Below, piece after piece: positions 7,173 through 58,092 of a stretch of DNA of 64,000 bases. The notes beneath the pieces were generated by a model. That model made no database searches. It was not told the DNA's origin and saw nothing but the letters and a program-made list of their open reading frames with translations. The translations under genes were made by a program, and so were the position numbers. Every line of letters begins with the position of its first letter. Position 1 is the first letter of the stretch. The stretch is from Trichoplax adhaerens (Eukaryota; Animalia; Placozoa): contig NW_002060944.1 of the NCBI RefSeq assembly GCF_000150275.1, positions 4,964,123 through 5,028,122 of the forward strand, read 5' to 3'.

Positions 7173-10100
7173 TTAACGTTGCCCTTGCATATTTGGCGGC
7201 AAAAACATTGCTTTAAGTTGCGAAGACATCTGAGCAATTTCTGTATCATCCTGTACATGTGCTTGTATTGCTTGCGCAAATTGTAACGATCCTGTAGATA
7301 CGCATAATGTATGTAATAACATTAGTAATATCGTCAACTTGTACTTAATCGTTATGTGAATTCTCTACATTTAATAGTGCCACAACTAGACTTAAAATGT
7401 ATGATGATTTGTGGTGAAATATTGATACTGAATTTTTTTAAAATTCCTAGAATAAAAGGTACCAGTGTTTTCACTATTCATTCAATCGCTTGAAAAACTT
7501 TTTAATAAGTTATAAAGCCCTCGCACATTGAGTATACTGTACATTAGTAAAGCAATGAAATTACTCTTGCCGCTTTTCAATAATGTTGTATTAGACCCTA
7601 CATATACTGCAACTTTCCGGTTATCATCTGTTATTACAAGAGTAAATGGAAAGCGATCGGGACCATAAAGTAAGATCTGATTCAAGACGTTCATAGTCAG
7701 AAACTACTGTGCAGTAGTCCCTGTCATCGTATCAACCAGAGAGAACAGCGATACTTTTAATGTTCGCAATTACTGTGAGAAGGTAAAGTTGTGGGTAAAT
7801 TCTATCATAATCCAGTAAACCATGTTGGGTTGCTTGCCTAGGTCATCAAATATCTTCAACTATAGTTATAGTCAATTCTCAGAATACTGTACTGTAACAG
7901 GGGGAATTTTTTTTCATCCTTTTTAAAATTAAAGTAGTAAAATATCAGTCTTCTCGGCCGTTACTAATACAGCTAACGAACAGCATATTTTGAGTGTACA
8001 TCTAAGTAATGTACATGCTATAAAGACACCTTAAAATACAATGCGAAAGTGCAATATACGCGTATAAAATTTAAATGTTAATATAAAACTACCCCACCAA
8101 ATACAGTCGATAATAAGATATCTTGCGACCCTGCAAAATTACCTTGTTGATCACTTGTGAAACCGTATTTTTCGATAACTCTTTGTTGTATTTGCGTTGC
8201 CACAGGTACTACAATTTGCATCATTTTAAGTAAGTCTGTACCAGCTTCCTCGCGAGCAGCATTCATTTTCGCTAGATTTTCCGGTTCCGTGAAAGCTTGG
8301 ACGACTTCCTTTAAGGCAGCTATAAATTACATGTAGTTATTGCAATATCAATTAGTTCACAATGCGTATCAAGTTGCAATTTAATCGGAAGACTTTTATA
8401 GGGTAATTGTGACTGTTGAATATCGATAAAACCACAAGGTATCAATTTTTACATAATCTAAATCAATACGTATCATGTCATGATTTATCCTGTAGAATAT
8501 TATCGGAGTAATTATTACTTTACGTGACTATTTAACATTAATAAAGCCAGCAGCTATAACTTTTTATATATCTAAATCAATATGTATCAAGTGACGATCC
8601 AATCTGAAGAATTTTTAGCAACTATAAACTCTTATATGTATAAATCAATAGGCATCAAGTTACGATCTATCCTGAAGATAGAATTTCATCAGGGTATTGT
8701 GACTCTAACTGACAATTGAATATTGGTAAAACCAACAGCTAAAACCTCTCATGCTCTATCCTGAACAATTTCATAAGGGTAATTGTGAATCTGTGAGACT
8801 GTTGAACATCGGCAATACCACAAGCTATAAACTCTCACATACGCGTATGTAAATCAACACTTATCTAGTCATAATCCTATCTTAAAGAATTTCAGCAGCT
8901 ATAGATTCTTACGTGTATCAATCCAATCACAACCTATCTCGACGAATTTCATTAGGGTAATTCTGATTGTGTAATTATTTAACTATTTAACATCGCAAAG
9001 TTCACTTTACTCCAATAATAGCAAGTCAGTCAGGTTCTATCCTAAAGAATTTTATTCGGGTAATTATGACTCTATAACTGTTTAACATCGCGAAATTAAC
9101 TTTACTACATTAATAGCCAGTCAGGATCTATCCTAAAGATTTTTATGGGAAAGAATTGTAGCTGTTTATCGTCGTTCAATGCCGGCAGTTGCAAACTAGT
9201 ACAATATCAAGGCGTATCAAGCCATGGTCTATCCTAAAGATTTTTGGTGGAGTCATAGTGACGGTTTAATATCGATAATTCAATATCAACTTCACTACAT
9301 GTACAAGAGTAGCAAGTTAGGATCTATCTTAAAGTTTTCAATAATGCGAGTTATAGCGAGGATACGCACGACTATGAATATATTCAACATTGTCTGCCGG
9401 GCAATGATTTGCAACTATGAATGTAGCCATCACACGCTACTTACAGACTATCCATTTCATATGGCTATTTATATCGTTTAGTACAAAAGTAATCATCATG
9501 GCAATTTTGTGATCACAACAGCATATTCCATTGCCTATACAGTACTCGATCATCACGGTAAAAGCTGAATTGGACTTATTAAACCGAAATATTTCACTTC
9601 TATGACCCAAGGAGACCCTATCTTACTATGGTATTGACATGATATATGTGCTGTAATAAGTGATTTCATCATTGATCGATTTCCATTGGATTAGTGGTAT
9701 CTAAAAGTCGATAAACATTGTTCAACGTTGGATCTTGATTCACCATTTACCTACAGTATACCATTTCCTGTATTCCTTTCTTTCACTACGATAATTTTAA
9801 AATTGAAGTGCTCAATGTAAAAACATTATTAATATAGATGTCGATAGATAACCAGTCATCGACGATCAGGGTTACGTACTGAAAATGATTCTAAACTATC
9901 AAGCATACTAAGCTTCAAGATCCAAATCATGACAATATCGATGGACGTCTATTTTCATTAAGCTATTCTTACTTCGATCGATTACCATTTTCACTACTAT
10001 AATTAATAGATAGGTAACGTATCCAATCACAAAAATCACCATCAAGTTTATTCGAACATCCTACGTGGCAATATGTTAATTGTGTAATACAGTAAGGCGA

Positions 10101-37890: not shown

Positions 37891-39897
37891 AACGTTATTA
37901 TCTAATTTAGTATAATACATATGCATGAATACGCATATTATTGCATACTAGTTTTTAGCTACTGTTTACCTTACTAAAGATATGGCCTTTAAAATACTAT
38001 TGCTAACCGTAAACGAAAAGAAGTATTAAATTAATGAGGTCTCGGACTCACGGCACTGCTATCTGTCGGGTTCTCGCATAAGCAGGTCAGTCTGAATATC
38101 GAACTGTTTGTCTATTTCTCTACTAATTACTCGTATAGCAGTTTCTCGGTAATCGGCGATTAACATGCAGTATATCTTGCCTAAAACTATAGGCGTGAAA
38201 GCAATTTACACTAAGAGGAATCATTTAAGGATTGCATGCCCTAATTAGGATTTTCTTCTCTAATTACGTAGATTTTGTGAAATTGCTCATAGTGCTTTGC
38301 ACCGTAATAGTTAACCTTCATGCTATAATTTAACCCCATTATGCTAGGGCTTTTTCGTAGTCAATCATTATCGTATACGGTATGAGCTAATGAACACTGC
38401 TTACGTATGACCGTATGAACATATAAGAAAGATGAGTTAATTTGACGGTTAACCTTATTATCATGTTTTATTCCATGAGATGAAACCTTACAGTTCCAGT
38501 GATACTTTCTGTAACCCTATGTTTGCAATTTACTAAAATCATGCAAAAGAGCTAATTAGAATAAAAACATTTGAAGAATGTAGATTTGTCGCACAAACGC
38601 CATTTTTGGCTCACAAGCAGTGAAGGATAAGAATGACTTAAAAACACTACAATTTTATATGATTATAATTATTTATAATCTTTAATTTGGAAGATAATAT
38701 TCAATCCAGTCAGATTATTATAAAGCCAATCGAAATGCTGAAATTTAGTATGGCAACATTTATTGGTTTAACGTTTTAATAAGTGAAAAATTTGTAATTG
38801 AACTTGTGCTTAATTATGATTAATAAGAAGGGAATTCACTATCTTCAACATATATTACTGTTGCCAATCATTATTATAAGGGAATATTATTTTAGCACGG
38901 CTACATTCCATTAAAAACTGCTTACATGACAATACTTATTTTACCCAAAATACTAACATCATCAAAGAGCTACTTTAAAACAGTTATTCCTATAGTTACG
39001 ATAGGTCACCAGTAAACAACTTAATTAACAGATAGAAGCTAATTCATAATTATAAGACTAACTATACGAGCGCATTAAATGATATACCACTCAATTACGC
39101 AAAAAACACACCGAAGCAAATTATTTAAGAGATTAAACAGCAAAGGGGAAGATTAGCGTGAAATCTATCTGTTTGTTACTGGTTAGATTAACGGACTAGT
39201 ATTCCAAATAAGAATCTATTAAAGTGCTTCACTAAGTTATCCTTTCTGCCCAAGCCAAAACAACATCCTAACAGAAAAGAAACGGTAAATATTTTCAGGT
39301 AATTTTAAAGGATATTAGGAACTTATACAGTACGTTATCATACATTAATGAACAGATCAATTGAAAATCTATGTTTAAAAATAAATTTACTTTGGAGTAA
39401 AATCGTAAAGAATACGCCTGTTACGTATTACATGTTTTAGTATTAAAAGAGGTCGTAAAATATGACTGCCATTGGATTAAATGATACCGCTTCTTGCGAT
39501 TAAAATCAATTTAGTAAACCTCTAAAACTCCAGATACAGTATTGTAACAAGGGACACCTACAACAGCAGTCATGACATAAAAATTGCACAGTCCTGTAAC
39601 GTAACTTAGTATTGGATTGTAGATTATTAGCCATTTTCAGTATGAAATACGGTATAGTAGCTTTCAACACTTATCATAAGCCTTTTTTAGTAGCCTGTAG
39701 CCATAGATTGTAATTGAAGATTCTATGTTAGAATACAGGTGACTATATGCTGTACTGTACAGTAGGGTGTTAGGTCACTATAGATTCTAGAGACAAAAAT
39801 AGATATGTAACTCATATACTAGGATATGGTTGGTTCATCGTACTTTGGCTGGTAAAAATAATGTCTACGTAAATACTGCAGCAGTTACCATATTAGA

Positions 39898-42800
39898 TTA
39901 TATAGATAGTCCGCTGTTAAACGTTGTTACTAATAATAATCTGAATAACTGTAAAATAAGGTAGAATGTTGCTATGCAGATTATAGCTGTCAATGCTACG
40001 AAGAGTATTCAAGTAGGCAACTTTAGCTTATTCAGTACTTCTGTCTAAAAGTCTTTCTAGTAATTGTATCCAGATAGAATAGAGCTTAGCGTAGATTAAT
40101 TATCTTTGCGTAAAGATCTAATAATTTTCTACAAATTTTGAAATTTCTTAATCGGTTTTATCACATGTCCTAACTTGCAATATCAAATAGATCACTTACA
40201 TTCCCTTGTATGAAAGCGGTTCCCACACCTGTTGTCGTGTCAGTTACTGAGGAAGAAAAAGATATGACCATTACATTCTATTTACATGGCTTTTTAGTAG
40301 ATTGCTCGTGTATTTATAATCTCGATAATACTAATACTAATCGAATCATTTTATTTCACTACGATAAATTAGTACATATCCAAGAAGCGTAAGTAAATGA
40401 AGTTTAAGGCCAAACAAATCGCCTAAATCTTCACTTGTACGGTAGTACTTTAGACAGGAACAAATCTATTCAAAGTGCGTTATTATAGCTTACTTGCTGA
40501 ACGAATTTTGATGACGATTATAATAAATATCCGAGTAGAAAAGAAAGCAAATTTTAGTAATACTGTACATAAGGCTTGCAATCTTATATAACTAGTAGTT
40601 CCGTCGACAAATTTAAATTTTAAGCAGTTAATAATCCAATAAATAATAGATCAATAAGAAAATTTTCAGTTTTTGAAATTAAGGAATACAAATTTTATCG
40701 ACATAAACGTTATTTCTAGTTACACTTACCTGCTGTAATATTTTCAACATTAGGACGTTATCGGAAAAGGAAAAAAAATCATAACGAATGTTAGATTAAG
40801 GAATATTCTATAATTTACTTTTGACTGGTCAACGTCGGACCTTTTCAATACTGTATTAAGTGCATAATATGATTCAACTCACTATCTCTGTTGTAACATT
40901 GTGTGCTTTCATTGGCGCTTTTCCTTTCATAGGGGGTTGTCCTTTCATAGGTGTTGGGCTTCGTCCAACTGAGGGTGATAAACGAAAGCAAAATTAATTA
41001 GTTCCATATTGAAAAACTGGTTTACACAATTACCTTTAGAGTATAAATTGAAAGATTTATTAATATGAGTTTTGTGTAATATTTATGACCATTCCGACTC
41101 GAGTTTGTAATATGATGATATAATTATATTATTCCCTATGATATAGAAGGTACCGGTACTGAAGCCATTCGTCTTTATATTATTACAACTAATTGCTAGA
41201 ATAGCTATTGCCGGTAATTGCAGTATAATAGTTTTGATAGTCAGTACCTTTAGGTTATTGTCACATAACATACAAAACAACTATCACAATTGAATTTAGC
41301 TAGCAATGTTTTTGTATACTGCTGATATGCAGATATTACACAGTGGTATCCTACGATGTAGTCACCGTTAATCTTATAAATCAAGACAAATTGTAATCCT
41401 CTAGAAAACTACTATAATCCCAAATAATCTGTAGAGAAAACTTATTGATGAAAACAAGAGCGCAAAGCATAGCATAAATATCAATATTTACCCGCTATTG
41501 TGCAATAAGGTTGCAGTAGCCATGAAAAGAGTGAAGAATAACATAATTAGTAATTCCTTATTGCAAAATGATAAAATTTTTTCCGATATGTTATATAACT
41601 AATTCTAATCTATAAGTATTTAATATTTGATGATAGCAATGATATCACTGATCAATTACAAATATATCAAGTGCAAAGCATCATCTATTAATACTAACGT
41701 AACCATCGATATATTTAATTGGTGCATGTTCTACGATTACATCATCAATATCGCATTTAACTTTGATGATCTAAATATATAATTGCATTACTAGTCCACG
41801 GCATTTGATTAAATTGATGCTTTCTACGAATAGGTTAGGGGTAGTAATGTAATGAATTACTCAAATATGCAGTGTCTTTATACATGCATATTAGTGATCT
41901 CATTTAACTAGTTACATTATGAGTACTCACAATCTGGGTTCCAGGAATTGAAATTTATTTGAGTGATGATTTGAAATTAGAAAATTTAACAACTTGTAAG
42001 AATGAGACTTTACGTTTCCAAGACTTAACGTAACATTAAGACTGCTACTATACATTGCTGTTGCTGGTACATGTTATTACATGATTACTAGGTACTTTAT
42101 TCAGCTAGTAATAGTAACAAAGTATACCATAAACGCATAGCCTATGTTACTTACTTCCTATATTATTGTAAATTCGCAGTGCGATAAAATTATCGACAAA
42201 AACCAATTCCAAGGTCGTCCGAAAATCACCATGTGAGGGGAAAAAATTGGGAGTATGTCATAAAAGTATTATAACAACTATGAAATCTATGCTACTATGC
42301 TAGCTATTGAGATAACAGAGTATGATCATTATATTAGAGTAGGCATGAAATTATAAAAATAAAATCGCAAATAACTTTAACATCGTTTCACAGCTGTGCC
42401 TATTTGACGTACGATTAAGTAAAATTAAGACTAACAATTATGGAATTAAGTTCAAGATTACTACCTTACTAATGTCATAGTCACTCATGAAATGATTTAT
42501 CCTACTAAGGTTATACAATACTGTACCATTACGCGTATTTCTCGATGGGCGCCGAGATAAATACAGTAGATAGATTTTAATCGTGTATTGTTGATGGTAA
42601 TACCTTCATACAATACAGCAGTCTCTACACTACTATAAATAAGATTACCATTCATTGCCGAATGATTACTTATACTATTCCGTATGTAAAAGATATTATC
42701 TAAATCAAAATAGTTATTGACATAGATTATGTAAGAGATATCATTACTACTTTGTATTAACTGAAAATTTACAACCGCTTTCATTTCTTGATATATTATC

Positions 42801-45800
42801 CAGCGACATTACAACGAAGAAATATAATCGTTATTTTTTAAGTGACTAGACATCTACGTTACTTACCGGCTGCCATATCGTCGAAGGATGCGTGAAGTAA
42901 TTAGCGAGAACGGATAAAAATTTAATACAACCAGTACTAACAGTTAGCAACAATTTGCTATAAAAGCACAAACATAGAACTACTATATGTAAATCTACAT
43001 AAGTACTGCCGTTAAATATTCTAAGCACTCATAAACTGCAGTATATAGACTATCCTAAATAGTATGCTTGTTTTTATAAATAACCTAATTCTCATTGGCG
43101 AACTATTGCTATCATTACCAAATTTAAAATTAACTTGATTGGTATTATCATGTACGTAATGCTGTACATAACTATCTACATAATACTTGAACATTATCAC
43201 TATATTGGTCGTGGCTATAGCATAAGATTTAGAATGCAACGCTCCAACCATCTATAATAACTGTAGCATTTTAATAAGTCAAATGACCGACTTTCTTTTA
43301 CACTCTGATATCAAAAAGTCGAATACTGTATACTTTTTACTAAACTCAGGCAAATACAATGTACTATGCAAGACCTAGTATAACTTCTTTACTAGATGCA
43401 TCATAACGATTATCACGTACAATTTTACAACCATTTTACTTACCACCTTTAATTAGCATTCATTCATGTTTAATTATCGAAACAGATAAATATAAAAATG
43501 ATGAAAGAAGCAATTTTTAGTATACAAATACAACAATCATTTGACTAATAATGACATATTAAGATTGACATATTTCAACCACTAACTCTATTCTAACGTA
43601 GACAACCAATTTGCTATTAACATATCTAATACAAATTTGCCTTTAGGTTATAATAATAACTTTGCATACTCCACGAAATTAAATAAAATAGTAAATCTTA
43701 AGACTGATCACATTTGTAATAATAGTAGATAAATCAGCTTACTTACTTTCTAGATTTTATTCGATAAGCACATACGAGGATTGAGAATTAATATGGAAGA
43801 AAATGAGTTAAACCGACAAAATCAGAATACAAAAGCTTCCTTATATTGAAAGAACTGAATAATTCACTCTTAAGTAAATAATGTCGTCTAACATATATAT
43901 ATATAATTTGTAGTAGTATCCTGACCAAAATTGGTGTAAAATTTTCTATTATACTTACGCCCTATATCGTACGTCAAAAGCCAAATACATTTAGATTTGA
44001 GGAATGCGGAATATGCAAATGCAAAATTTCCAGTTATTTAGTACAAAGTAAGTAAGCTATTATCCTTTATTTTTTACAGGTATATCGCCATATAATATTG
44101 CTGTTATAGTAAATATTCCGTCAAAATTTACTCATTATCAATTAATAGAATTTTTAAATTAATGTTATGTAACATTCATTTTTATTACAAACGCTATAGT
44201 TCAGTAAAAAAAAGTGCTGTAATACTATAGTCTACTGTAGATTAATTCATTGGATATATACGTACCATCTATCGGTTTTATTCGCAACAGAGCCGAGAAA
44301 GTTGAAAGAAAACAATAGAAAACAAGATTGTAACCATTACTTCAATTTTGAGATTCACTGCAGAGCAGTGGTATGTAAAGATTTATACAGTCACTAATTT
44401 ATAGCAATCGCTAGCCATCGTAAGAGTACTTTATAAAGAATAGTTAATCGAAATGGAATTAAAAATTAAATCCTTTAAAGCTTTAATTATTTGCTACATC
44501 ATATAAGTGTCATCTGCGCATATATCCGATTAAACTATAACAAAAAATTCAAAATATTTTTTCGGTAGCTGTAAGTTAGCTTGAACAGTCATAAACGTTT
44601 TCAAACTTACAATCTATTGGTAGATTGATCGTGTAATTTTCACGGCAGGATTGGAGAAAGAGTGTAACGAAAGTATAAATCAAAAATAGGCGAAGTGGTT
44701 AGGATATGAATATAACTCCTTCTCGGGTCACACAACCTCCTCTTATGGTATCTAATTTGCTAATAATATTTCAGCTCAGACAATATAGTATTTAATGGAT
44801 AGTTACAGTATATCATATTATACCACTCCGCTGGCGTATTGTTCACATAATACATCAAAATTTATTATTTCCAACACTAATGACACGAAGCTGACAAAAA
44901 TAAAGACTACATGTGGCATGTAAGAGATGACCTTGCGTAGATTTACGAGAGACAATTTATAACCAATCTCACTAAACACATCTCTAGTGCTACGTTATCG
45001 TAACATGATAATTCGTATGTATAGGTAGGTGTTACGAAGCCTCTGAGTCATTTCATGTAAGACGATTCTATCAACCATGCTCTACCAATGTAGGCTAGAT
45101 TATATTCCATTATTAAGATCGATCCTTCGATGACTATTCTACCTACTTTCTATAAAATATCATTTAATAAAAAATCAGTAACAATTAGTACTATCAAAAC
45201 TAATAAAACAATAACTTTAAACGAGATTAGGGTGAAGTTCTAGTACCTGTATATAATAACTATCAAGGACTTCTAAAAGTCCTCTTGAACTTATATACAG
45301 TATGACATAGTACACACTGTGATATGTAAATGTACATAATATGCAATGATGAAAACTGCCTAAATATCAATTTTTTACTTTAATGAACAAAAGCTTCAAT
45401 AATCTACCACTGATAACGTATATTCTGTCAACGTCAATATAAGCTTACTTCCTAAAGAATTGCGTCCAATGCCACCACGATTGCAATATTGCAATATTAC
45501 GAAAATAAGAGCTCAAGATCAGTATACATTACTTAGGCCATAACATTGAAAATTGTAAATACAATAAATTTACTATTACGAACTTTGTACAACAATACAA
45601 TCAAAGTGATTTTGTAGCTACAGAAGCTTCATTTTATATTGATTTGCCTTAATTATGTTAATTAAAAAAGACATAATGAATCTGAAGTGTCTATTACACA
45701 AGATTACAGCATAGCTAGTCAGATATAGATTGACTGCTAATATCCTTTCAACCAGTCATCAAACTATAGTTTTTGGCTATATAAATTATATAATATTTCG

Positions 45801-48800
45801 AAAGAATAACAGTAAATCATATAGTAATTAATTACTTACTTCCTAGAATTTCCAAAGGTGACGTTATTTATTAAAAGGGAATAAAAAAAGCATTCTGTTA
45901 GCTTGTATAGCAGTTAACGGATAAATCTTAAATAAGAATAGAATTACATATAATTTTGCAATCCTATCTAGATTAAGTTTGCTTATTACAGTATGCTATG
46001 CATCATAAAACAATAAAAATAAATCATAAATTACAATATTTTACAAAAGAGGTATTAGACGTCTATTATACAGTATTTAATCGTACAAGTACATTACAAG
46101 GTATCGCAGGAAGAAGTATAGAGGTTAATCAAATTGATGTTACGTATCCCATTGCAGATCTATTCTTTGTGAATTACTGCATTTCATCACATATCATATC
46201 CCTCCGCATATTTATTCATAAATACACTATGCATACAGTATATCGTATTCACTTTCATAGATAAAATCTACTTACTTGCTGTTATGATTGCCCAAATTTA
46301 AAGGTAAGTAAACGGTTGATGTATAATTTATTGCAGAGACAGACACACAAAATAAAGTTAGGAATGTCAGTACAATACTTTTACATTAAATTATACCACA
46401 TCCGTGAAAATCTTTGCCCAAAAAATCAAATTTAGAATTCATTATAACTTACTCGCTAAATTTTCATATTCCATTAGTGATCAGAATTTCATAAAGGTAA
46501 AGGAAAGATAATAAAATCTTATCGTCAATATCAGTATTTATCAGCGATTGTACCACATAGTTTCAAGCGATTAACATAACACTATATTAACGATGATATC
46601 CACTTCAGGCGTTCAACTAGGCAACATATTACTTTCTACCAATGCAATAATGCTACGGTAGATCCTTTATGACGTACTATTATTAAATATACAGTATAAT
46701 ATTGACTTAATAACAAATTTCAACAAGAAGATTCGTTAATCATTCGTGATATTAAATAATATCCAGAATCACTTTATGTGCCCAGTGAAGTATTATCGCT
46801 CCACTTACAATATCGTATAAAGATTGTGACTGCAAGTCTAACCTAGTGATACTTAAACTTAAACATGTCGTTTAATGCTATGTATAAACTAAAGAGAAGT
46901 ATGCTAAAGATAGTCATCGTAGAGATGTAACGCAAAGCATTCACATGATCAACGATAGTACTTACGCACTATTTCCCACAATCCAATGTTTCAATTTGCG
47001 AAATAAAAGTAAAACAGAAATTAGTTAAAAATTATATTAATTACTCAAGAACCTGTAACACTTTAAAGCTAATTAATTTAATTATAAGTCCTTCCTTTAG
47101 CACAAATACTGTAAACTTTCTATAATTATAATGTACTGTACTATATCCTGACCAAACTAATATAAATGTACGTACATGCAATTTTTTAATGCTATATTAA
47201 ATTATAGACTACTTGATATTAAGGCGTTGGACAATACTGATTGTTATGAAGGTAAAGCTTCGGCCTAGATCTTATGTACGTAATACTAGAATTTTTGCAG
47301 TAATATCTAGTTAATCAAGCAACTCGACGTGCCATCTTTGTAAGCCTAGACATGGCTAATCACTCTACAATGGGTATATACTGGATAAAAATGACTACCT
47401 ACAAGTAATGCCATTTTAAAATATACTGTATTAAGAAGGGAGTTAAAATTAGCAGCACTAGGGTAACTTTTTCCTATTGATATCTGCCTTATAAAGTTCA
47501 AAATAGCTATTAATAAGTCTATGTACTTACTTCCTGCATAGTTTGCATCAATAGGCGAGCATGACCGGTTACCAAAGAGGTAATATAAGGATTTACAATT
47601 AGATTTATAAATCTTAAGATCAATTAATCTAAGTACTCAACGTAAAATATCTGAACGCAATGTAACTAAATTTTAAATCTTGAAATAATATAATTTCTTA
47701 AAGCTAGTAGAGCAAATTAAAGTAACGGAAATGCACTGTAAACATTAAAATGAAACTAAACCCTCCTAAAAGAATATAGTACGGTATTAATTGTAAGCTA
47801 GTATTCATCGCGTTTTCTGCAGGTATTTATAATTTCATGTTTCGGAAAGCTTCATGTATGTATTTACAGTATATTATAAATAAAAAAATTGTCTCATACT
47901 ATTTTCGTATTTTTAACAGTTTTTTGACAAAAATTTGAAAATTTAGAATGCAATATAAAGATTTAGCAATACTAAACTTACGGTCTAAATTTTTTATTAC
48001 GTATCCGAAGCCATTACAGTTGGGCGTCATTATAACGAAATATAATTAAAAGATAGAATTGATCAGTTTAAGTAGCATCGTCTCAAATAAATAGCCTTTT
48101 ATTGAGCTAATGTCGAAGAATCTAGCGCTAGCTATGCCATATACAGCAAAAGGAAATTTTTATTGTCCTTTATAAACTAATGCTGTAATAAAAACATATT
48201 TATTTCCTTTCGTAATAAGTGATATTACTAAGCTGATTTTAAAGGCATTATGCCTACTTAATGAAAATCTCTTATAATCCTCTAAATACGAGAAATGTAT
48301 TTCTATTATGAGTCACTGGTAATTTGAAAGCTTCAGCAGCTTTTCACATTTAATCTCTATTATTAAAATAATAATTTTAATAATCGTAGATCTAGTTTCT
48401 TTCGATTATAATTTGTGGGTTTTATATAATCATATAAAATTAATACAGTTCTGATTTTCTTCTATATTCACAGGGAAGTGAGACATGTTTTGGGCACTAT
48501 ATAATTAACATTCGAACTTACTTGCTATAGGATTTCAATTTCATTGATATTAATCCGAAATAAAAGAGATGCCGAAGAGTAAAGTATACGAACAAAAATA
48601 ACAAAAATTGATTAGAAAAATTTTAAATTTAAAAAGCACCAACGGAATATTATGTTCAGTATGTATAGTTGTTAGAAAGAAATGATAATTTCGATAATTA
48701 TAGGCCTTTTTTGTATCTAATTTATGCTATATGCATGATGCTTTTCAATTAATTGCGGTCAAAAAGAGAAATCTCCGAGAAGCATTAAACTTTCAGAGAG

Positions 48801-51800
48801 TTATAAAATATCAGATTAACTATAGCTGAAGAACGATATAGTACAACTAAAATTATATCAGAGTCCTAACTTTTGAACATTACGACAGTGTAATTTACGA
48901 TCAAGCAACTAAATATCCGAAATTATTAATATAATAAAATGCCTTATAGGATGCTATTCTACAACTTTTTTTTATGGGAATTTTCAAGATTTTTTTACGT
49001 GAAATAATTCATACGTTACTTACCGACTGTAAAATCATTTTCAATTTCATGATTAGCCATCAGATATTACAGTATCATAAAAAATTCAAAGATATCCAAA
49101 ACTATTAGAGCTAATTTATCAGCATACAAGCAATTTTGTTGCATTTAATGTAGATAAATCAAACTATATAACCATAATGGAAATAAAGATAAGGATAGTA
49201 CTGTAATCAGTAGCAGAATAATACAAGATTCTAGCCACTATATTCAGTAATTGATACTTACCAGCTAATAAATATATAATTGTTGAAGGCACCAAGGTTA
49301 AATGAAAGAAAACATTACGCAAGGAATGGTTAGAAACAACAATAGGAAAAATTCTCAGAATTATTTTAATGAATTATCAAATACAACATAATATTAGTTT
49401 GCGATAGTGCTACTTACAGTCTATTGCAATCACGGTTGTACAACGCAGTATAGCATGTTGACGAAAAATAGACAATTAAAAACTAATCTACTTAAATAGC
49501 TTCCAAAAACTTTCATATAGGCCGAATATTAAATTACTAAACATAATTAACTATTTTACTTAAATCTCGTTCTACACAATACAGTATACAACGATTTGGT
49601 AAAGCTTAGATTAAAAAATCATCAGTTAATTTAAACAAGATGTTTCTTTTATAATAATGATATTAAATTGATACTAATTACTGACCTCCTAGTTTATTGC
49701 CGTATCCGATCATAAGACATACAAGTGAACAAATTAGAACAGAAATAAAAAAACGAATAGGTAAATTTTATCCTGAACCAGACTATATTAAATGCTCATC
49801 TACAATCTATCGCCGATAAGTAACAGAATTACATTTAGCAGGCTATATCTTAAATAATAATCTACGCTTAATATGATCATAAACATCATAATAAAAATGC
49901 CGACTATCAGTATGATCTCTACGAAAGCAGGGTAGAGCAATATAATAAAAAGAAATAAATACTAACCGGCTATAAAGATCACAGAACCGTCCGAGATTCC
50001 ATAAAACGAGATGTGATGAAAAGATAGATGCACATTTTCATTAGCTTCTGAGACGTTTAAATTTTTTTAAATATCAACGCAGAAAGATCTCTATAGGTAC
50101 TATATTCCTTTTAAAATGTCCCACTCAAACTGTTATCAGTACATGAAACTGGAAACTACTACACCTTTAACCTAAGAATATTTACTTAAAATTTGAAAGA
50201 TGTCAATATCAATCTGAAATTTTATGAAGCTTAAGTATGCGCAGATAATAATACAACTACTATCAGATAGAACGTTTTTTTCCACATTTTAAATATTATC
50301 CGTAAAATAACGTAATATTTCAAGGTTGATTTAAAGACATGCGAGCAGTTTCATGACCACTAATTAATATAGTGTAATTTACCGAACTATTGAAGTTTGA
50401 ATCGTTAATAACCATAATTAGTATATACTTAATTATAAAACTAATATTTTACGGCATATTCAGATTGCAACGTAATTCGGATATCATTAATACTGTACTT
50501 ACAGGCTATTGGTTGCCAGTACAGATCCAGTAGGTAAGTAAAGGATGAGAACATAGATAAAAGTCAGTTTCAATATAAGTACCGCTGTATATCGAAAACA
50601 ATTTTGCATGACATATAGAGTATTTACTAGGTATTTCAACAACTATCTAAAGTTATATTAAATTGATACTGTCATAAAAATTAATTGCTAATAATTCAAA
50701 TTACTTACCGTCGATGAGTCCTGGCACTAATACTGTTTGAGTTGATAGCAAAGATCATAATGGAATCCAAGTATTAAACAGATATAATACAACTCACATT
50801 ATAAAGGACAGCCTTTAATAAATCGATCTTATTCAATCTCTCAATCGACTTACAGTATATCTATCCTATATCGTCAATAAGTAAAATTGTAAATAATTAG
50901 TAATAAGCTGAAAGCGCATATCCTCTTTAGTATACTGGGGATTAAGATAATTAAAAATATCAAAAAGATTTCAGTTTAACTTACAAATCATCGATACTAT
51001 GTTATGAACCAGAAAATTGTGAAGCAAGATCCGTAAAAGTTAGTATTTTCAGATTGAACGTAAAATCTCTGTATAAATTCCTAGGCTTACCTATCATCGA
51101 TCCTAAAATAGATACAAAAGTAGTTAAGAATTAGTTAAGAATTGGTACTACAAAATATAAAATTTGCGGCTAAGTTGCCGTAAAAATCAACGGGTCATTG
51201 CCAACAGGTGGTAACTATCCGTATTGGTATTACTAAAGATTTTCCTCTGTGGTTGTAAACTTAGTACTTGTTAAATACTCCGTATACTTTAGTTTATATG
51301 TTAAGATTGTACTTACTGATACTATCAAAAGTACCTTAAATGTATATGCGCAGTTTGTAGCATTATAGGTTTACAGCTTACAATAAATAGCGATTTTAGC
51401 TCACTAAGATGTGCGCATGAATCATAAACTTGTAGTAAACTTATAAATCATCTATTAGGCTAATATTTTATTTGTATCCATACTTACGGCATGGAAATCC
51501 TGTTGTGTTTGGTCGTTAAAAGAATACACGAAAGCCAGTATTCATATTAGAAATTTTGCGTAATATCACTCGTAAATATATAACATCTACAACGAATATT
51601 CCGACTTACGGTAAGTCCAATCTACGAAATAGTTATTTAGGGTGTAGAGGGAAGATGTAATAATCATAAGTTCGTTTCTAGTCATTGAAATCTATCAGGC
51701 CGTACAATATCGCATTAACTTACGGAACTTCAACCCTAGTAACGATAACAGAAAGCGTACAATTATTTATTGTTGAAATGACCGTTATGTAATTGCAAAA

Positions 51801-54800
51801 TTATTGCTTATACCAATCTGGTACTATTTTAGCAATTACATACTTAAGGTAAAACGATTTAATGAATGTAACAAATAGTTTTACAGCTAAATATGCGATA
51901 ATTATAAAATAAAAATATTAGACATCCCTGAGCTGCTTAACTTATGAAAATGACTATGATAAATTATAAATATTTAGACATGAATTTAAATCTTAATGTG
52001 AAGTATTTCAATTCTATGATGACAACGTTATAGAAAGGTGCAATTATTTGGTATTCAGCCACAAATTATAATTTTTATAATAAAGCGCGATAAATTAACT
52101 ACGACGTATTTTATATTAAAATATTTCGTATACTAACGGTGCTTCGTCAATAAACATCTCGCTGATGTTTTCAGGAATCCAAAATAATCAGAAAGATATA
52201 TAAGCCATTACATAAACTGAGACCAGTAATCGCGGTATTAAGTTAATTTTCAACTTACGATAATTCCACTCTGCGAGATATTAATAATGAAGAACTAATT
52301 ATTTGCAAACATAGCAGCTCGATTCGTACTGAAAGTCATTGGAATGTTATTTCTTAACTTACGGTGCTCCGATCCTAATGACAATATTAGAAATTTAGAG
52401 TTAATTTGTATATAGAAATAACCATATAGCAGAGCAATCTTAAAAATATATCAATTCTATTACCACAGTATCTACATTTACAGGCTATATATAAGCTATA
52501 ATAACGTGTAGAATATAAGATTTGGAATAACTTACGATGCTTGCAAACTAAACGCAGAGCAATTAGTACCACAAATTGCAGAAATAAGATGACATAATTT
52601 TCATTAGTAATCAAGTAGCTTTAATTTCTTAGGTTTACTTTCAAATAATTGGCTTACTAGGCTGCGATCCTATCAGCAAAAACAACAAATAAATAATTAC
52701 ATTTGAAGAACTTGCAAATTTACCTTACTTTAATTACTAACAAAGTCAAGTAGTTACTATTCCTTATTAAAAACTTACGCTTCATCCATCCTAATAGGTT
52801 AGACCAAAAAACGGAACCATTTTAAAAATGACACATACCATTAGTGAATACGATTATCTATTTCCTAGCTGTTATTGTCTTCTATTATTCCAAAAATACC
52901 AAGCACTACTTACGTTGTATTAACCCTACCAGTACAACGTCGAAAGAATTCAATTACAACTTAGAACTACTCCGATCTTAGCAATATGCAATGAAGATAA
53001 AACAAATTTAAATCTTACGTCTCTTTCTCTCTGGAGTTCAATTAATAAGAATGGAAGAAATTGAAAAGTATTACCAATAAATTTTGTAAATGGAAACCCA
53101 TTGATAAGGGGGCTACAGGTATACGTAGATTCTATCTTAACTTACGTATTATTAACCCTAAATAAGCAATCAATTTAGAAGTCAATTTTTTTTGACTTGA
53201 GATCATAGAAGGCTTACAGCAGTTAGCAAACAGTTTAAACCTATAGCAGTTCAACTTACGGTGCTGTCGCTCTAAAATTGGGCGATTAAAGGAGCAAAAA
53301 TAAGATTTAAAATAATGTTGAAGATGTTACTAATCATTGCTTGCAAATAAGAGGAAGTCGGTCTATATTAATCATTAACTCACGGATCTTCAATCCTAAA
53401 TATAATAACGACTACCATTAATAAATTAAAAAATATCTTAATAAATCCTAAGATAGCTACGAATTGATAACATATCAGCTCAATGCAATAATAATAACTA
53501 AAATGTAAATCTCTTTGTAAAATATTCATTCTACGTTATTGATATCACTGTAGTCAGTCCATAAATGATTACAGAGCACTGTTGTATTCTCGTCTGTCTA
53601 GTGTCATACTGATATGTGGAAAAAATCTAGTAAGCACGAGACACGATCACAAAAGTGAAAACTTACATGGTGCTGAGAAATTAGTATCCACGATGAATAG
53701 TATTCCAATTAGTGATAAGAATTAAAGGATAGCAGGTAGTATTAAAGCAGAGAAGACATAAATTAACTTCTAGGACAATTTAAGGTTATAATTTGGAATA
53801 TATCCAACTGCAAATAGTTGTAGATAAAGCGATCAAATTTGCTAACTAGAAATAATGACAAGCTAGTTTTTGCCTAGCCATGTAGTAACACTATTGTAAT
53901 AATAATTGTAATAATAATCGATCTTAACATAAATAAAATTATGCAAGTAGTAATACCGTAATAGCTACGTTTAAGGAATTCCACATCATACTATTGCAAC
54001 ATAACTGAAGCAAAGCTAACAAGACAGAAATACTATCTGAGAAATAGCAACTTACGAAGTTCCATTCCTTCATATTTTATTGTTTCGGGCATGAAGTCAA
54101 GAAATTGAGAATTAAATTAGTGATCAAATTTCATTTTTACTACTACTGCATTTTCTAAAATAAAGCCACTATTTGCTATTAGATAGATCTTATGGTCAGC
54201 TTAAACTGACACTTGAAATATATCAAATATTTATTTAATTTGTAACCAATACGTTTAAATCTACTATTAGGTTTCTCCAGCCCAGCACTAATTGCAGCAG
54301 TTATTATAATTAAAAATTAGCTCATAATAAAAGCCCTATCTAACAACTATTTCAGAACCGTCATTTCAAGTTTACAACCACAAATTGCCTAGCTAATTGC
54401 AATCATTATAGGTGCGAGAAAGCAAAAGCTATTTTATTCATAATTTAAAATTATAAATAATTAGAAATCTGCTACAGTATACAGCTTCATCAAACCTAGT
54501 GCTAAGAACTGATTCCAATATTGCATATCATCGTAAAGCAAAAGCTAATTATTTTTTATGTATGTTTCAAAATTGGTCACTTAAGATAATGGGTGCAGCA
54601 GTATAGCTTTGACTTTTGAATTTTATGTCTATCAAAGTATCGCTTGTAACAAGAATACTAACTTTGATGTCTCCACTTCAAAGAAATGATGACTTCAAGG
54701 AAGAGACGCCAGCGGGAATGCATCCAATTGTAGTATTGTGAAGGAATGAATTAATAACCAGAGTAATTTTGGCATATTTATAAAGATAATCATAATTGAA

Positions 54801-57800
54801 AGCAAATAATCTTTAAGATGAACTAACGCTAATCAGAAAATAAAGGCAATAACAGGAAATAGACTAAGTTGTACTTGTTTAAATACACTTAATTGGAATC
54901 AGACTACTATACTCGTATGTGCAATAATATTGAGAATTTGTCTTAACTTACGTCTTTTTCGTTCTAAAAATAAAAAATCAAAGAAATACGAGTACAATTA
55001 GTCTCAGTGATTAGAGGAAAATATTTTTAGTACTTTTCCTCGAAATATTATAATTTCACTACATGAAAGCTTAGCAGCAGGTCAAAAATATTAGTAGTAG
55101 CAAGTCGGCATTAAAATTAGTTGTATACGCGGGACGGAGTAAGAAATAGTCTTGCTATTACGTCGACGGCATACGCGAATCGTAAAATTACATAAAGTAA
55201 TTTTATCGTCGTGTGTCCTATCATAAACTTTTAGAACTACATCGTTCTAGAGGGCCTTGGTCCTGATCATTTGCGTGGACAGTATTGTATACGTTATTAC
55301 TGTATTTTATACTGCGATTTACCAATAATTATATAAGTGCTGGTGATACTACTTCCCTTAATTAAGAAGGAGTTAGTATTATTAATACGCGGTTTTAAAC
55401 TACGGATAATATTGGAATCATTCTACTAGACGATGGTAGGAACTAAACAGGAATAATCAGAGTTTTTTCTACTATACAGTCTACAATAAAGGATAAGATT
55501 AGTCCCTGAAATTCGATGGCTATGGACGATCACTTACGTTGCATTTGCCCTAAAAAAGAAGCAAAAAAGATGATGTATTTTACTTTTACATCTTACCAAT
55601 AGCACTATCACATTTTCAAGACGCTCAATCTTCATTCGATAATCAGCAGTAGTTTTTACTATTCAATTTTGAAAGTTTACTTTGTTGTAAGCTAACATTT
55701 AGTTTTAACTATAGCCATGAATAACTTACGTATCTTCAATTCTATGCACCCATGTTACAGTACATTTTTGGAAGAAATGAAAAAAGTATTAGTAGTCCAG
55801 AATAATCACGGATAACTTCTAGTGAAGCAAATAGAATCATTGGACAGCTTACTCATCCAATTCGGAGCTAAATCAAAGAAAGAAAAGCAATTTTAATGAT
55901 CATGATAGTGTTCCGCCATTACCCTCTTTGAGAAGATTTCTGCTGATTAATATCATATACGCTATTAACGCTATTAAATTACTGACTTACTCTGCGTCAA
56001 TGTCGAGCCAATGACTACAAAAAGTGGCAAAGAAAGATAGACAAGTTATTCATTTTGAACATATAGACGAATGACCATAGATAAATTTTTGAAAGCTATT
56101 GCTATACAATATTGCTTATAAATTCTATAATGAATTCATTTCAGCTTGAGTTCTAGTAAATAACGTGTAGACTGCATTTCAAAGACAGTTTTTGAAGGCC
56201 TACTGTGTAATATAGCATGAGCACGTCAATTTCAAAGAGTAAAATGAAATATGCAAAATCAGTTATGAATATTTGCTTGTCGAGTGATTATCTTACATGA
56301 AGTATAATGTAGTCAAGGATATTGAGCAAGATAGCAATACGAATGACCATAGATAAATTTTTGAAAGCTATTGCGATACAATATTACTTATAAATTCTAC
56401 AATGAATTCATTTCAGCTTGAGTTCTAGTAAGTAACGTGTAGACTGCATTTCAAAGACAGTTTTTGAAGGCCTACTGTGTAATATAGCATGAGCACGTCA
56501 ATTTCAAAGAGTAAAATGAAATATGCAAAATATCAGTTATGAATATTTGCTTGTCGAGTGATTATCTTACATGAAGTATAATGTAGCCAAGGATATTGAG
56601 CAAGATAGCAATACGGTACGGAATTATTCATTAATTATTTAATTAGTGAATTTTTCGCCATATTGAATTGCCGCTAGAACTGACTGAGGTCAATTGGCTT
56701 TCAATTGGCTTGCTTATGTATGGTACTGTACAAAGTAAACTGTTCGTGAGTAGTGAGCACGTGTTAGCTAGACTTGACCCACGGAATAGACGTGTGGTAG
56801 CGAAGTGTCATGCACGAGTCACGACATCATTGGATTGACTTCTAAGACCGTAATTGTTTCAAAGCAAGTGGTGTCAACGTGTCAACTCTGTCACTCAAGG
56901 CATGACGCGACGAGAAAAAACGCGGGATCATACCGGAATTGACAATCCACAGGGAAGAATACTTAGTATAGAAACTATAGAAATTACAAAGTAGAAAAGC
57001 GAAATTCCATACAAACGTATTTGCGCCGTCTATCCGATATATACTGTAGAATCCCAATAACTTTTCTATGATGGCGCTTTATGCATTCAATGACGAACTG
57101 GAATTGTATCCATTTTAATGGATAGAAAAAATAAAAACATTCAATGCTATCCTTCTGCTAAAATTATCCTGTTGTCGCACCGTATTCGACAACGACTACA
57201 AAGTCTGTAGTCCATATCGTAAGAAAAGAAACTAGAATAAGTCCTGCCGTCCCAAGGTTACAGTAGAATAGGCTAAGACGCTTTTTTATGGTGCCGCTAA
57301 TATGATAACCGTTGTGCTCTAAAAGACTAAACTACTATTCATTTAAAGCAAGCAGTAAAAATAATGCTATACAATTCTTCGGATAAGTTATCATGATGCT
57401 TTAAATTACCTTCGGTTTCCCCTAAATGACACAGATAGAAGGAAAGAAACGGTCATTTGATTAATATACAATATAACGGCAAAGTGTGCACCCTATACGC
57501 GCACAAAATGGAGACAAATATTCTCATATATCAAGATAGATAACTTACGATCGTTTGCTTTCGTATCATTAAAATTGGATGGAAAATCATTGCATGGATT
57601 TATTCATTACTAAGTCGAAATTGTATGAAATATTATTAAATTTTATTAACTATTACAACGAGTTTCCAGTGAATAATGTCCAAAAAATTGACTTACTTTT
57701 TCATACGATTTCAAAGAGTTGAACCATCCGCCAAAGTCACATTGCGGAAAATAGCACAAAAGTAAGATTCACCATTCCATCAATATAATTATTATAATAA

Positions 57801-58092
57801 TGTCGGTTATACGTGCGTATTTGCTGAATATGATTGCTAATAACCTACCTCAAGATACCCCTAGATAAAAAGATAGTGACAAAGTCAAAATTATCATTTT
57901 ATTCCTGATTAAATTTTAAATTTAGAACAAGTCTATCGGTATTAAATTCTCGAACTCGGATTTAAAAAAATGTAATTGAATACTTTCATCGAAAAGATAA
58001 AATGACAAATATAATTACATTTCAACTGGTGCCATGAAATGGCAGACAAGAGCGATCGTTAAACTGATCGTTATCAATTTCATCGATGTCAT
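39898..58092 (-). CDS. Micro-exon gene encoding a secreted protein: signal-peptide exon 58092-58019, about 28 exons of 6-24 nt (mostly 12 nt), about 24-28 exons of 3 nt, then exons 40968-40883, 40246-40200 and 39948-39898
   Basis: First exon MTSMKLITISLTIALVCHFMAPVE is a signal peptide ending in phase 2. Dozens of AG-(12 nt or 3 nt)-GTAAGT units follow on the minus strand, and the concatenation stays open in phase 2. Confidence 0.8.
40494..50505 (-). other. Array of 3-nt micro-exons
   Basis: AG-NNN-GT with strong donors at (+ coords) 50503, 49967, 49686, 49418, 49262, 49024, 48522, 47982, 47531, 46966, 46453, 46276, 45840, 45449, 45147, 44611, 43959, 43747, 43444, 42867, 42155, 41931, 40730 and 40494. 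Weaker donors at 49804, 46633, 44266 and 41492. Confidence 0.82.
50709..57860 (-). other. Array of 12-nt micro-exons (plus 6, 15 and 24-nt exons)
   Basis: 12-nt exons start (+ coords) at 57849, 57410, 55730, 55538, 54952, 54056, 53384, 53260, 53146, 53019, 52914, 52779, 52658, 52536, 52363, 52259, 51724, 51610, 51488, 51091, 50985, 50854 and 50709 (12 or 18 nt). Others: 24 nt at 55991 and 52138, 15 nt at 55853, 6 nt at 53667. Confidence 0.88.
56069..56615. repeat. Near-identical tandem duplication of about 272 bp (intronic in the micro-exon gene)
   Basis: GAATGACCATAGATAAATTTTTGAAAGCTATTGC...GAGCAAGATAGCAATACG begins at 56069 and again at 56341. Confidence 0.95.

Follow-up and report, generated by a model that had tools for sequence, protein, structure and literature searches.

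The gene described here lies on the minus strand of a 64,000-nucleotide (nt) stretch of the Trichoplax adhaerens genome (contig NW_002060944.1), which is called the window below and in which positions are counted from the first letter. It is in all likelihood a micro-exon gene that extends from about 58.1 kb to 39.2 kb and encodes a small secreted precursor. Within it, a series of 23 real exons of three bases each, placed one after the other over 8.6 kb, writes the cationic core of the product with its two cysteines. Two more three-base exons follow after the next larger exon, and the gene holds 25 of them in total. In the genomic sequence each appears as an AG-NNN-GT unit, in which the three bases are enclosed by an acceptor and a donor.

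The triplets are retained as exons in RNA

Sequencing runs were sought with positions 39850-41000 of the window, and the assembled contigs of four runs were placed on 39860-45859. X4 and X8 are RNA runs from a single study (P2). The DNA-like run X1, which had an even depth of about 100 over the introns and contigs of up to 34.8 kb, served as a control. In X4, a loose contig end behind 43446 reads, in transcript order, CGA CAA GAA GAA AAA ATT ATG GGC AAA, followed by GTG and then by the unspliced downstream intron. An X4 joint (45149->45449) connects GAA (45451) to AAA (45149), and the X4 loose end before 42155 contains GAA (42157), ATT (41933) and the larger exon. In X8, ATT was joined to GTG (43446->44611) with the nine letters TTTGCCCAT (ATG GGC AAA) between them, and the introns upstream of ATT and downstream of GTG were retained. 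Another X8 joint (43749->43959) links GGC to AAA, again with the flanking introns retained on both sides. Behind the larger exon, the loose ends of X4 and X8 before 40883 continue with CAG, CAA and the 47-nt exon (contig depth 357), and both of these triplets had been expected at this place from the sequence.

Altogether, 14 of the 25 3-nt exons were found spliced, invariably in genomic order, with none inserted or missing among the good candidates and with the CGG unit at 41494 bypassed. No triplet joint was observed in the X1 contigs on 39860-45859. The contigs with joined triplets include flanking intron sequence as well; the triplets therefore do not come from a retrocopy, and partly spliced molecules were recorded. 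The original prediction, made from the letters of the DNA, had taken the triplets for true 3-nt exons and had named their concatenations in RNA, or RNA free of them, as what would decide; the contigs keep the triplets, and 14 units are joined. We conclude that the triplets are real exons that are retained in RNA, and neither intermediates of recursive splicing nor relics.

The adjoining acceptor and donor of an AG-NNN-GTAAGT site do resemble the ratchet points of Drosophila, and the mature contig composed of all micro-exons could not itself be anchored on the genome. Such sites might therefore be stepping stones, or the remains of them, for the removal of one very long intron, with the triplets absent from the finished messenger RNA. 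We consider this extremely improbable. Ten consecutive triplets are retained in joined RNA, CAG and CAA are kept between two larger exons in the contig of depth 357, and an NNN|GTAAGT donor is incapable of removing the NNN in front of it. Moreover, the triplets prolong the sole open frame of the upstream array of small exons.

The units exceed the chance expectation and are not a tandem repeat

On the plus strand of the interval 40494-50505 there are 19 ACTTAC hexamers, and 18 of the 19 are followed by NNN and CT, with the lone exception at 46803. This recount agrees exactly with the number given in the original prediction, and the predicted order of the triplets also agrees with the sequence. 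On the minus strand, 18 exact AG-NNN-GTAAGT units are found from 50505 to 40732, of which 17 are inside the main run of 50505-42155. Seven additional units that match five of the six donor positions fit into the series (CCG 49969, GAG 49688, GAA 45451, AAA 45149, ATG 44268, ATT 41933 and CAA 40496). CGG 41494 is a further unit with one donor mismatch, and it is skipped in RNA. When all AG-NNN-GT sites of the interval were scored (n = 53), the donors clustered, with 18 sites at 6/6 and 11 at 5/6. The predicted run of 24-28 exons is real as a long run, and its size is 23, with 2 more past the larger exon. A lone AG-TCT-GTAAGT unit was also noted at 9442-9444 on the minus strand, distant from the array.

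When both strands of the entire 105.6 Mb were counted, AGNNNGTAAGT occurred 3,744 times and the reversed control 4,093 times. The expectation is 0.148 units per 8.35 kb of one strand, against which the 18 units were counted. The probability of at least 18 is 1.6e-31; this value uses the units of the entire interval, and with the 17 that lie in the 8.35 kb itself the order of magnitude hardly shifts. The introns separating the units are 150-962 nt long, with a median of 304 nt. An origin of the units from a tandem repeat or a transposon was considered and rejected. A direct-repeat search gave a few short, weak matches only, and pairwise local alignments of the 110 nt upstream of each unit were no better than those of shuffled sequences. 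Since the introns are not mutual copies, the units do not form a tandem repeat.

A long AG-free zone and a displaced pyrimidine tract precede the triplets

All 25 3-nt exons have a zone without AG upstream of their acceptor, which measures 39-179 nt with a median of 73 nt. In the same region, the background gap from one AG to the next has a median of 11 nt, and 12% of the gaps reach 39 nt. At 27 other AG-NNN-GT sites of the interval the AG-free zone is at most 37 nt; CGG stands apart with 60 nt. Among the units that the original prediction had put in brackets, ATG (44268) is used in RNA and CGG (41494) is bypassed, as described above. The bracketed ATT (49806) and AAA (46635) have 4/6 donors and AG-free zones of 34 and 15 nt, respectively, and are probably not exons.

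The AG-free zones are T-rich, and TTTCT, TTTTT and CTAAT are enriched in them 3.5- to 5.5-fold (CTAAT 4.7-fold). The CTAAT-type motifs are putative branch sites that accompany the upstream tract. At 3-22 nt upstream of the 3-nt exons the pyrimidine fraction is 0.50, which equals the background, whereas it is 0.65-0.68 at the 12-nt exons of the same gene, where it peaks at this distance and declines further upstream. At 33-62 nt upstream, the fraction is 0.66-0.71 at the 3-nt exons versus 0.51-0.57 at the 12-nt exons. For the best pyrimidine window of 12 nt, the median distance of its 3' end was 38 nt from a 3-nt exon and 15.5 nt from a 12-nt exon (Mann-Whitney p = 2e-6). By inspection, the pyrimidine tracts of the three ordinary exons of the gene adjoin the AG. 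The donors have a G at +1 and +5 in 25 of 25 units and read GTAAGT in 18, and the acceptor is YAG in 24 of the 25.

Three other features were looked for. UGC was not enriched near the acceptors, with a TGC density of 0.0129 in the spacer versus 0.0113 in the region. An RNA structure that would draw the branch site near to the AG was rejected, as the fold z-scores (mean +0.26) gave no signal. Extended pairing with U1 was rejected as a general rule: the donor has an A at +7 in 18 of the 25 units versus 3 of 26 12-nt exons (Fisher p = 1e-5), but a T or C at this position at other loci.

On the AG-free zone and the pyrimidine measures, units confirmed by RNA and unconfirmed units did not differ. 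The ten units upstream of the RNA coverage (50505-46968) were accepted mainly because they have the same signature as the confirmed ones. It is nevertheless conceivable that the RNA-covered downstream part is the only true run, and that several of these ten are optional, strain-specific or dead, which would leave a much shorter constitutive run. The contigs were placed on the sequence up to 45859, two of the upstream units have 5/6 donors (GTTAGT and GTCAGT), and the good-looking CGG was skipped in RNA. The CGG unit (41486-41496) has the complete acceptor signature including the upstream pyrimidine tract, was skipped in the single RNA contig that covers it, and is probably a decaying or optional exon. 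However, all ten upstream units carry the signature of the confirmed units: their AG-free zones measure 60-179 nt and their tract is displaced. Eight of them have perfect GTAAGT donors, whereas the skipped CGG is the sole unit without a G at donor position +5. We therefore regard the shorter run as unlikely and keep the run of 23.

Splicing of the triplets is not strictly sequential from 5' to 3'

The original prediction had suggested that a long consecutive run would need an unusual mode of splicing, such as a strictly sequential or an intron-defined one. With sequential 5'->3' splicing, in which each step regenerates the substrate of the next, a 3-nt exon would never need to be defined, and the process would resemble recursive splicing. 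The partly spliced contigs leave this proposal hardly any chance. In X8, the GGC|AAA intron was gone and both neighbouring introns were kept, and the triplets from ATT through GTG were joined with the intron upstream of ATT still present. In X4, GAA, ATT and the larger exon were joined, and the upstream intron 43443-42158 was kept. Introns were thus gone on both sides of introns still present, and the intermediates in the X4 and X8 contigs are not ordered from 5' to 3'. The introns that had been removed are short (209-345 nt), and longer ones (533 nt, and 1,286 nt across the CCG unit) were retained, on either side.

The other half of the suggestion, an intron-defined mode, fits the cis signature of a long AG-free zone with a putative branch site and a pyrimidine tract displaced upstream, although intron definition itself is our interpretation. 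We propose that each intron would be recognised individually, by intron definition. With the branch site and the pyrimidine tract about 40-70 nt upstream, the site of U2AF and U2 would be clear of the U1 site that lies 3 nt past the AG. Studies of the c-src N1 exon and of exons that had been shortened artificially have established steric clash as the usual explanation for the skipping of very short exons, and the displacement would abolish this clash. The first AG that follows the branch site would serve as the acceptor, and this would account for the lack of AG in the spacer. The strong intronic half of the donor may compensate for the exon half, which is fixed by coding. Once one flanking intron has gone, the triplet would belong to a longer exon, so that any order could work, and longer introns would tend to leave last.

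Alternatively, the cis geometry alone may not suffice, and inclusion might be governed chiefly by a dedicated trans-acting factor that corresponds in placozoans to the SRRM3/4 eMIC system. In bilaterians, a long AG-exclusion zone and a strong CUAAY branch site likewise mark the exons that depend on eMIC (PMC8797185), and the arrays are limited to a few genes, perhaps with cell-type-specific expression. This is possible, but we find it rather doubtful. A six-frame search of the genome with PF15230 (SRRM_C) gave no match at E <= 1, although a domain split by introns could escape such a search. UGC is not enriched by the acceptors, and the donors are strong here. The origin of the eMIC domain is placed in the ancestors of bilaterians, and the programme is described as bilaterian (PMC8797185). 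The original prediction had treated it in the same way, and the search for an SRRM_C or eMIC-type domain in this genome agrees with it.

The frame continues through the triplets into a predicted secreted precursor

The concatenated small exons (321 nt) contain 0 stops at offset 1, versus 12 and 5 at the other two offsets, and the offset-1 frame agrees with the phase handed on by exon 1. All small exons are multiples of three, which puts the series into phase 1-1. Each 3-nt exon completes one codon with its first base and opens the following codon with the other two. Because the codons are split in this way, skipping of a triplet would recode the neighbouring residues, as had been anticipated.

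The run encodes residues 132-155, RLRRLCRKPNADKKKKLWAKCRKF, of which 12 of the 24 are basic, 1 is acidic and 2 are cysteines. Residues 1-24 are signal-like, with the hydrophobic stretch MTSMKLITISLTIALVCHFMA as read by eye. Residues 25-130 are acidic (22 D+E versus 5 K+R, net charge -17) and contain five N-x-S/T sequons. The net charge of the basic C-terminal part is +16 or +11, depending on whether the larger exon has 82 or 86 nt, and the predicted precursor has 184 or 212 residues, respectively. From its sequence, the product would consist of a signal peptide, an acidic pro-region and a basic C-terminal part, and would be secreted.

The triplets could also be spliced in and stay untranslated, in an untranslated region or a non-coding RNA. 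By chance alone, 24 random codons would be free of stops with a probability of 0.16. However, the frame leads from an ATG and a putative signal peptide through all 321 nt of small exons, with the stop counts given above, and proceeds into a coherent acidic-then-basic precursor, and the small exons are without exception multiples of three. An untranslated series is therefore very unlikely, and we take the triplets as coding.

The larger exon, which had been predicted with 86 nt, has this length in the window, but 82 nt in all three covering runs. The 4 nt at 40953-40956 are present in the window and absent from X1, X4 and X8. Both C-terminal frames are open. The 82-nt frame ends with ...KFWTKPPMKGQPPMKGKAPMKAHNVTTEIQQ and stops at the first codon of the 47-nt exon, which gives two cysteines in the basic part. 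With 86 nt, the frame has a different tail that ends in the last exon, and there are three cysteines. The indel may be an assembly error or a strain difference. In X4 and X8, a C>T change at 42870 destroys the acceptor AG of CCG, and a C>T change at 42874 makes an AG exactly 3 nt upstream. The shifted acceptor is predicted to yield a 6-nt exon, CAACCG, that would keep the Cys codon and add one residue.

Similar arrays occur at other loci

Six places were examined after pair-pattern searches in the genome. Five of them have arrays on one strand with 4-18 units each, 67 units in total, and one of these arrays is 4.3 Mb away on the same contig as the window. The AG-free zones of the 67 units have a median of 79 nt and a minimum of 39 nt, and zones of 65-176 nt were noted for the five arrays. 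No pyrimidine tract adjoins the AG, and the pyrimidine enrichment is found 53-72 nt upstream. The sixth place (L006 on C1412) matched the pair pattern but was a plain tandem repeat without AG-free zones; it was rejected as an array and provides a negative control. The pair-pattern counts were in modest excess over the reversed control (18 vs 10, 18 vs 19 and 15 vs 4). We read this as a sign that only some ten loci of the genome carry such arrays. In addition, a tandem repeat of about 170 bp was noted at G000:C645:737-1579 and C1411:3705757-3706271, which has AGGATGTAAGT in every unit and may be a satellite or another unit array.

Layout of the gene

The exons of the gene and the arrays at other loci are listed in Table 1.

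Table 1. Exons of the gene in transcript order, with positions in the window, and one-strand arrays found elsewhere in the genome
Feature	Position	Strand	Description	Basis
First coding exon	58019..58092	-	ATG at 58092, 74 coding nt, ends in phase 2; signal-peptide-like MTSMKLITISLTIALVCHFMAPVE	sequence and translation
Small-exon array	50709..57860	-	about 26 exons of 6-24 nt (21 of exactly 12 nt), all multiples of 3; predicted acidic pro-region with N-x-S/T sequons	sequence
CCT 3-nt exon	50503..50505	-	donor GTAAGT; AG-free zone 77 nt	sequence
CCG 3-nt exon	49967..49969	-	donor GTTAGT; AG-free zone 73 nt	sequence
GAG 3-nt exon	49686..49688	-	donor GTCAGT; AG-free zone 82 nt	sequence
ACT 3-nt exon	49418..49420	-	AG-free zone 60 nt	sequence
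CTG 3-nt exon	49262..49264	-	AG-free zone 87 nt	sequence
TCG 3-nt exon	49024..49026	-	AG-free zone 73 nt	sequence
CAA 3-nt exon	48522..48524	-	AG-free zone 179 nt	sequence
ACC 3-nt exon	47982..47984	-	AG-free zone 95 nt	sequence
GAA 3-nt exon	47531..47533	-	AG-free zone 77 nt	sequence
TGC 3-nt exon	46966..46968	-	provides first Cys codon; AG-free zone 73 nt	sequence
CGA 3-nt exon	46453..46455	-		RNA: first triplet in 27-letter X4 loose end behind 43446
CAA 3-nt exon	46276..46278	-		RNA: same X4 loose end
GAA 3-nt exon	45840..45842	-		RNA: same X4 loose end
GAA 3-nt exon	45449..45451	-	donor GTAAGC	RNA: same X4 loose end; X4 joint 45149->45449
AAA 3-nt exon	45147..45149	-	donor GTAGGT	RNA: same X4 loose end; X4 joint 45149->45449
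ATT 3-nt exon	44611..44613	-		RNA: X8 joint 43446->44611 (9 letters between); same X4 loose end
ATG 3-nt exon	44266..44268	-	donor GTACGT	RNA: among the 9 letters in the X8 joint; same X4 loose end
GGC 3-nt exon	43959..43961	-		RNA: X8 joint 43749->43959; letters inside the other X8 joint; same X4 loose end
AAA 3-nt exon	43747..43749	-		RNA: X8 joint 43749->43959; same X4 loose end
GTG 3-nt exon	43444..43446	-		RNA: anchors X4 and X8 contigs at 43446
CCG 3-nt exon	42867..42869	-	third base of second Cys codon; AG-free zone 65 nt	not seen spliced
GAA 3-nt exon	42155..42157	-		RNA: X4 loose end before 42155, GAA|ATT|larger exon
ATT 3-nt exon	41931..41933	-	donor GTGAGT	RNA: X4 loose end before 42155
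CGG unit, skipped	41492..41494	-	donor GTAAAT; AG-free zone 60 nt	RNA: X4 contig joins ATT straight to larger exon
Larger exon	40883..40968	-	86 nt in window; 82 nt in X1, X4 and X8	RNA: contig depth 357 in X8
CAG 3-nt exon	40730..40732	-		RNA: X4 and X8 loose ends before 40883; X8 loose end behind 40246
CAA 3-nt exon	40494..40496	-	donor GTAAGC	RNA: X4 and X8 loose ends before 40883; X8 loose end behind 40246
47-nt exon	40200..40246	-	starts with stop codon TAA in 82-nt variant	sequence and RNA
Last exon, start portion	39180..39267	-		RNA: X4 loose end before 40199 matches 39266 onwards
Array L001	C1413:9349000-9358999	+	one-strand AG-NNN-GTAAGT array	
Array L002	G000:C1385:31000-38000	+	one-strand AG-NNN-GTAAGT array	
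Array L003	C1400:22000-31000	+	one-strand array; many CGC/CGT triplets; repeated blocks	
Array L004	C1394:620000-627000	+	one-strand AG-NNN-GTAAGT array	
Array L005	C1389:745000-751000	+	one-strand AG-NNN-GTAAGT array	

In the small-exon array of 50709-57860, several exons have common flanks (TTAACTTAC...CCTA on the plus strand), which suggests duplication of units. The introns of this array are frequently just 92-133 nt long. A 1.4-kb intron of the array contains a direct repeat of 162 nt (56067-56228 and 56339-56500), whose copies are 98% identical and lie 272 nt apart. At the other end of the gene, the depth of X1, which is about 100 in other parts, rises up to about 490 in 39860-40160, where several contigs of X1, X5 and X8 also end. 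The last intron probably contains a dispersed repeat or differs in structure at this place.

Discussion

Several observations weigh against the view of the locus given here. The ten units at 50505-46968 are outside the RNA contig coverage and rest on the sequence signature, and none of them was seen spliced; the same holds for the splicing of the CCG unit (42869) in the contigs placed on 39860-45859. The RNA evidence consists of contigs assembled from k-mers and not of raw reads, and gives no inclusion levels, and the opposite ends of one long contig may come from different molecules. X4 and X8 belong to one study, and their strain or species differs by about 0.5-1% from the window. The 4-nt indel separates the window from all three covering runs and alters the predicted C-terminus, and translation and secretion are predictions. 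The branch points are putative and were deduced from motifs. At the other loci, the preference of the donors for A at +7, found in 18 of the 25 units of this gene, does not recur, the pyrimidine signal is weaker, and several arrays hold recently duplicated units, so that the units there are not independent.

Among known systems, the architecture is closest to that of the micro-exon genes (MEGs) of schistosomes, for which exon sizes of 3-81 bp are reported (PMC10526429). As in the MEGs, which encode secreted products, most of the coding sequence is divided among tandem symmetric exons that are very short, have lengths divisible by three and alternate with far longer introns; here, about 26 exons of 6-24 nt and 25 of 3 nt were found, all in phase 1-1. 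The gene differs from the MEGs by its 23 consecutive exons of minimum size with one split codon per exon, and by its host, which is a free-living non-bilaterian and not a parasitic flatworm. We know of no MEG with a run of 23 minimum-size exons. Of the variation by alternative use of micro-exons that is typical for MEGs, only the skipping of CGG was seen here, in contigs that give no isoform quantities.

Single 3-nt exons are known in vertebrates and insects. The neural microexons controlled by the eMIC of SRRM3/4 resemble the triplets in their sizes down to 3 nt, in the long AG-exclusion zone and in the CUAAY-type branch site (PMC8797185). They are, however, single cassette exons in ordinary genes, whereas in the present gene UGC is not enriched, the donors are strong and no SRRM_C was found. 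Recursive splice sites likewise have an AG next to a strong GTAAGT donor in a long transcribed stretch that is removed stepwise. Such a site is a zero-length exon (AG|GT), whereas here three bases stand between AG and GT and are retained in the RNA contigs. According to the work of Simpson and colleagues from 2000, the invertase mini-exon of plants needs a U-tract and a branch point that precedes the next 5' splice site by about 50 nt. The plant mini- and micro-exons (9 nt in potato invertase; 1-15 nt in land plants) are constitutive very small exons with strong GTRAGT donors as in this gene, but they occur singly or at most two adjacent (PMC8831610), compared with 23 in a row.

Four or five arminin-like genes for putative antimicrobial peptides (AMP1-4) are described in Trichoplax, with high expression in peripheral ventral epithelial cells (PMC12013895). 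Their precursors have 150-250 residues with a signal peptide, an acidic N-terminal part, a basic C-terminal part and a C-terminal glycine as an amidation signal; the genes are named Ta 55945, 56030, 60631 and 64402, and their exon structure is not mentioned (PMC12013895). The precursor predicted here, with 184 or 212 residues that are first acidic and then basic, matches them in layout. In contrast to them, its predicted ends are ...EIQQ and ...AERIT, with no C-terminal glycine and with only internal G-K and G-Q sites. An antimicrobial function of the putative peptide is a guess by analogy. A literature search for Trichoplax or Placozoa together with microexons turned up only a 1-bp exon in mitochondrial cox1 and unrelated papers, and no paper describing arrays of 3-nt exons in this genome was found.

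According to textbook models, internal exons shorter than about 50 nt are hard to define, since the complexes on the two splice sites clash sterically, and the known 3-nt exons are isolated and usually depend on special factors. The presence of 23 of them in a row, in an animal without neurons and without a detectable eMIC domain, would mean that the core spliceosome copes with such exons routinely when it is given a particular layout of the introns. About 90 units, here and at the five other loci, form a natural set for testing this layout. We put forward, tentatively and as a possibility, that placozoans own a distinct eMIC-independent way of splicing one-codon exons, characterised by displaced branch sites and tracts, long spacers without AG and perfect donors. 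In about ten genes it might serve to build and edit cationic secreted peptides in a modular fashion, residue by residue, by duplication, loss or 3-nt shift of the units of intron and triplet. If this is true, the turnover of units would already be visible between close strains, with CGG decaying and the acceptor of CCG shifted by exactly 3 nt.

Exons of this size cannot be placed by standard aligners and gene finders, so that current annotations probably lack placozoan genes for secreted peptides or give them wrongly. The affected genes are candidates for antimicrobial or signalling peptides. Since every codon is split between exons, the gain, loss or skipping of a unit would alter the peptide in steps of a single residue, which would be an unusual route for the evolution of peptides.

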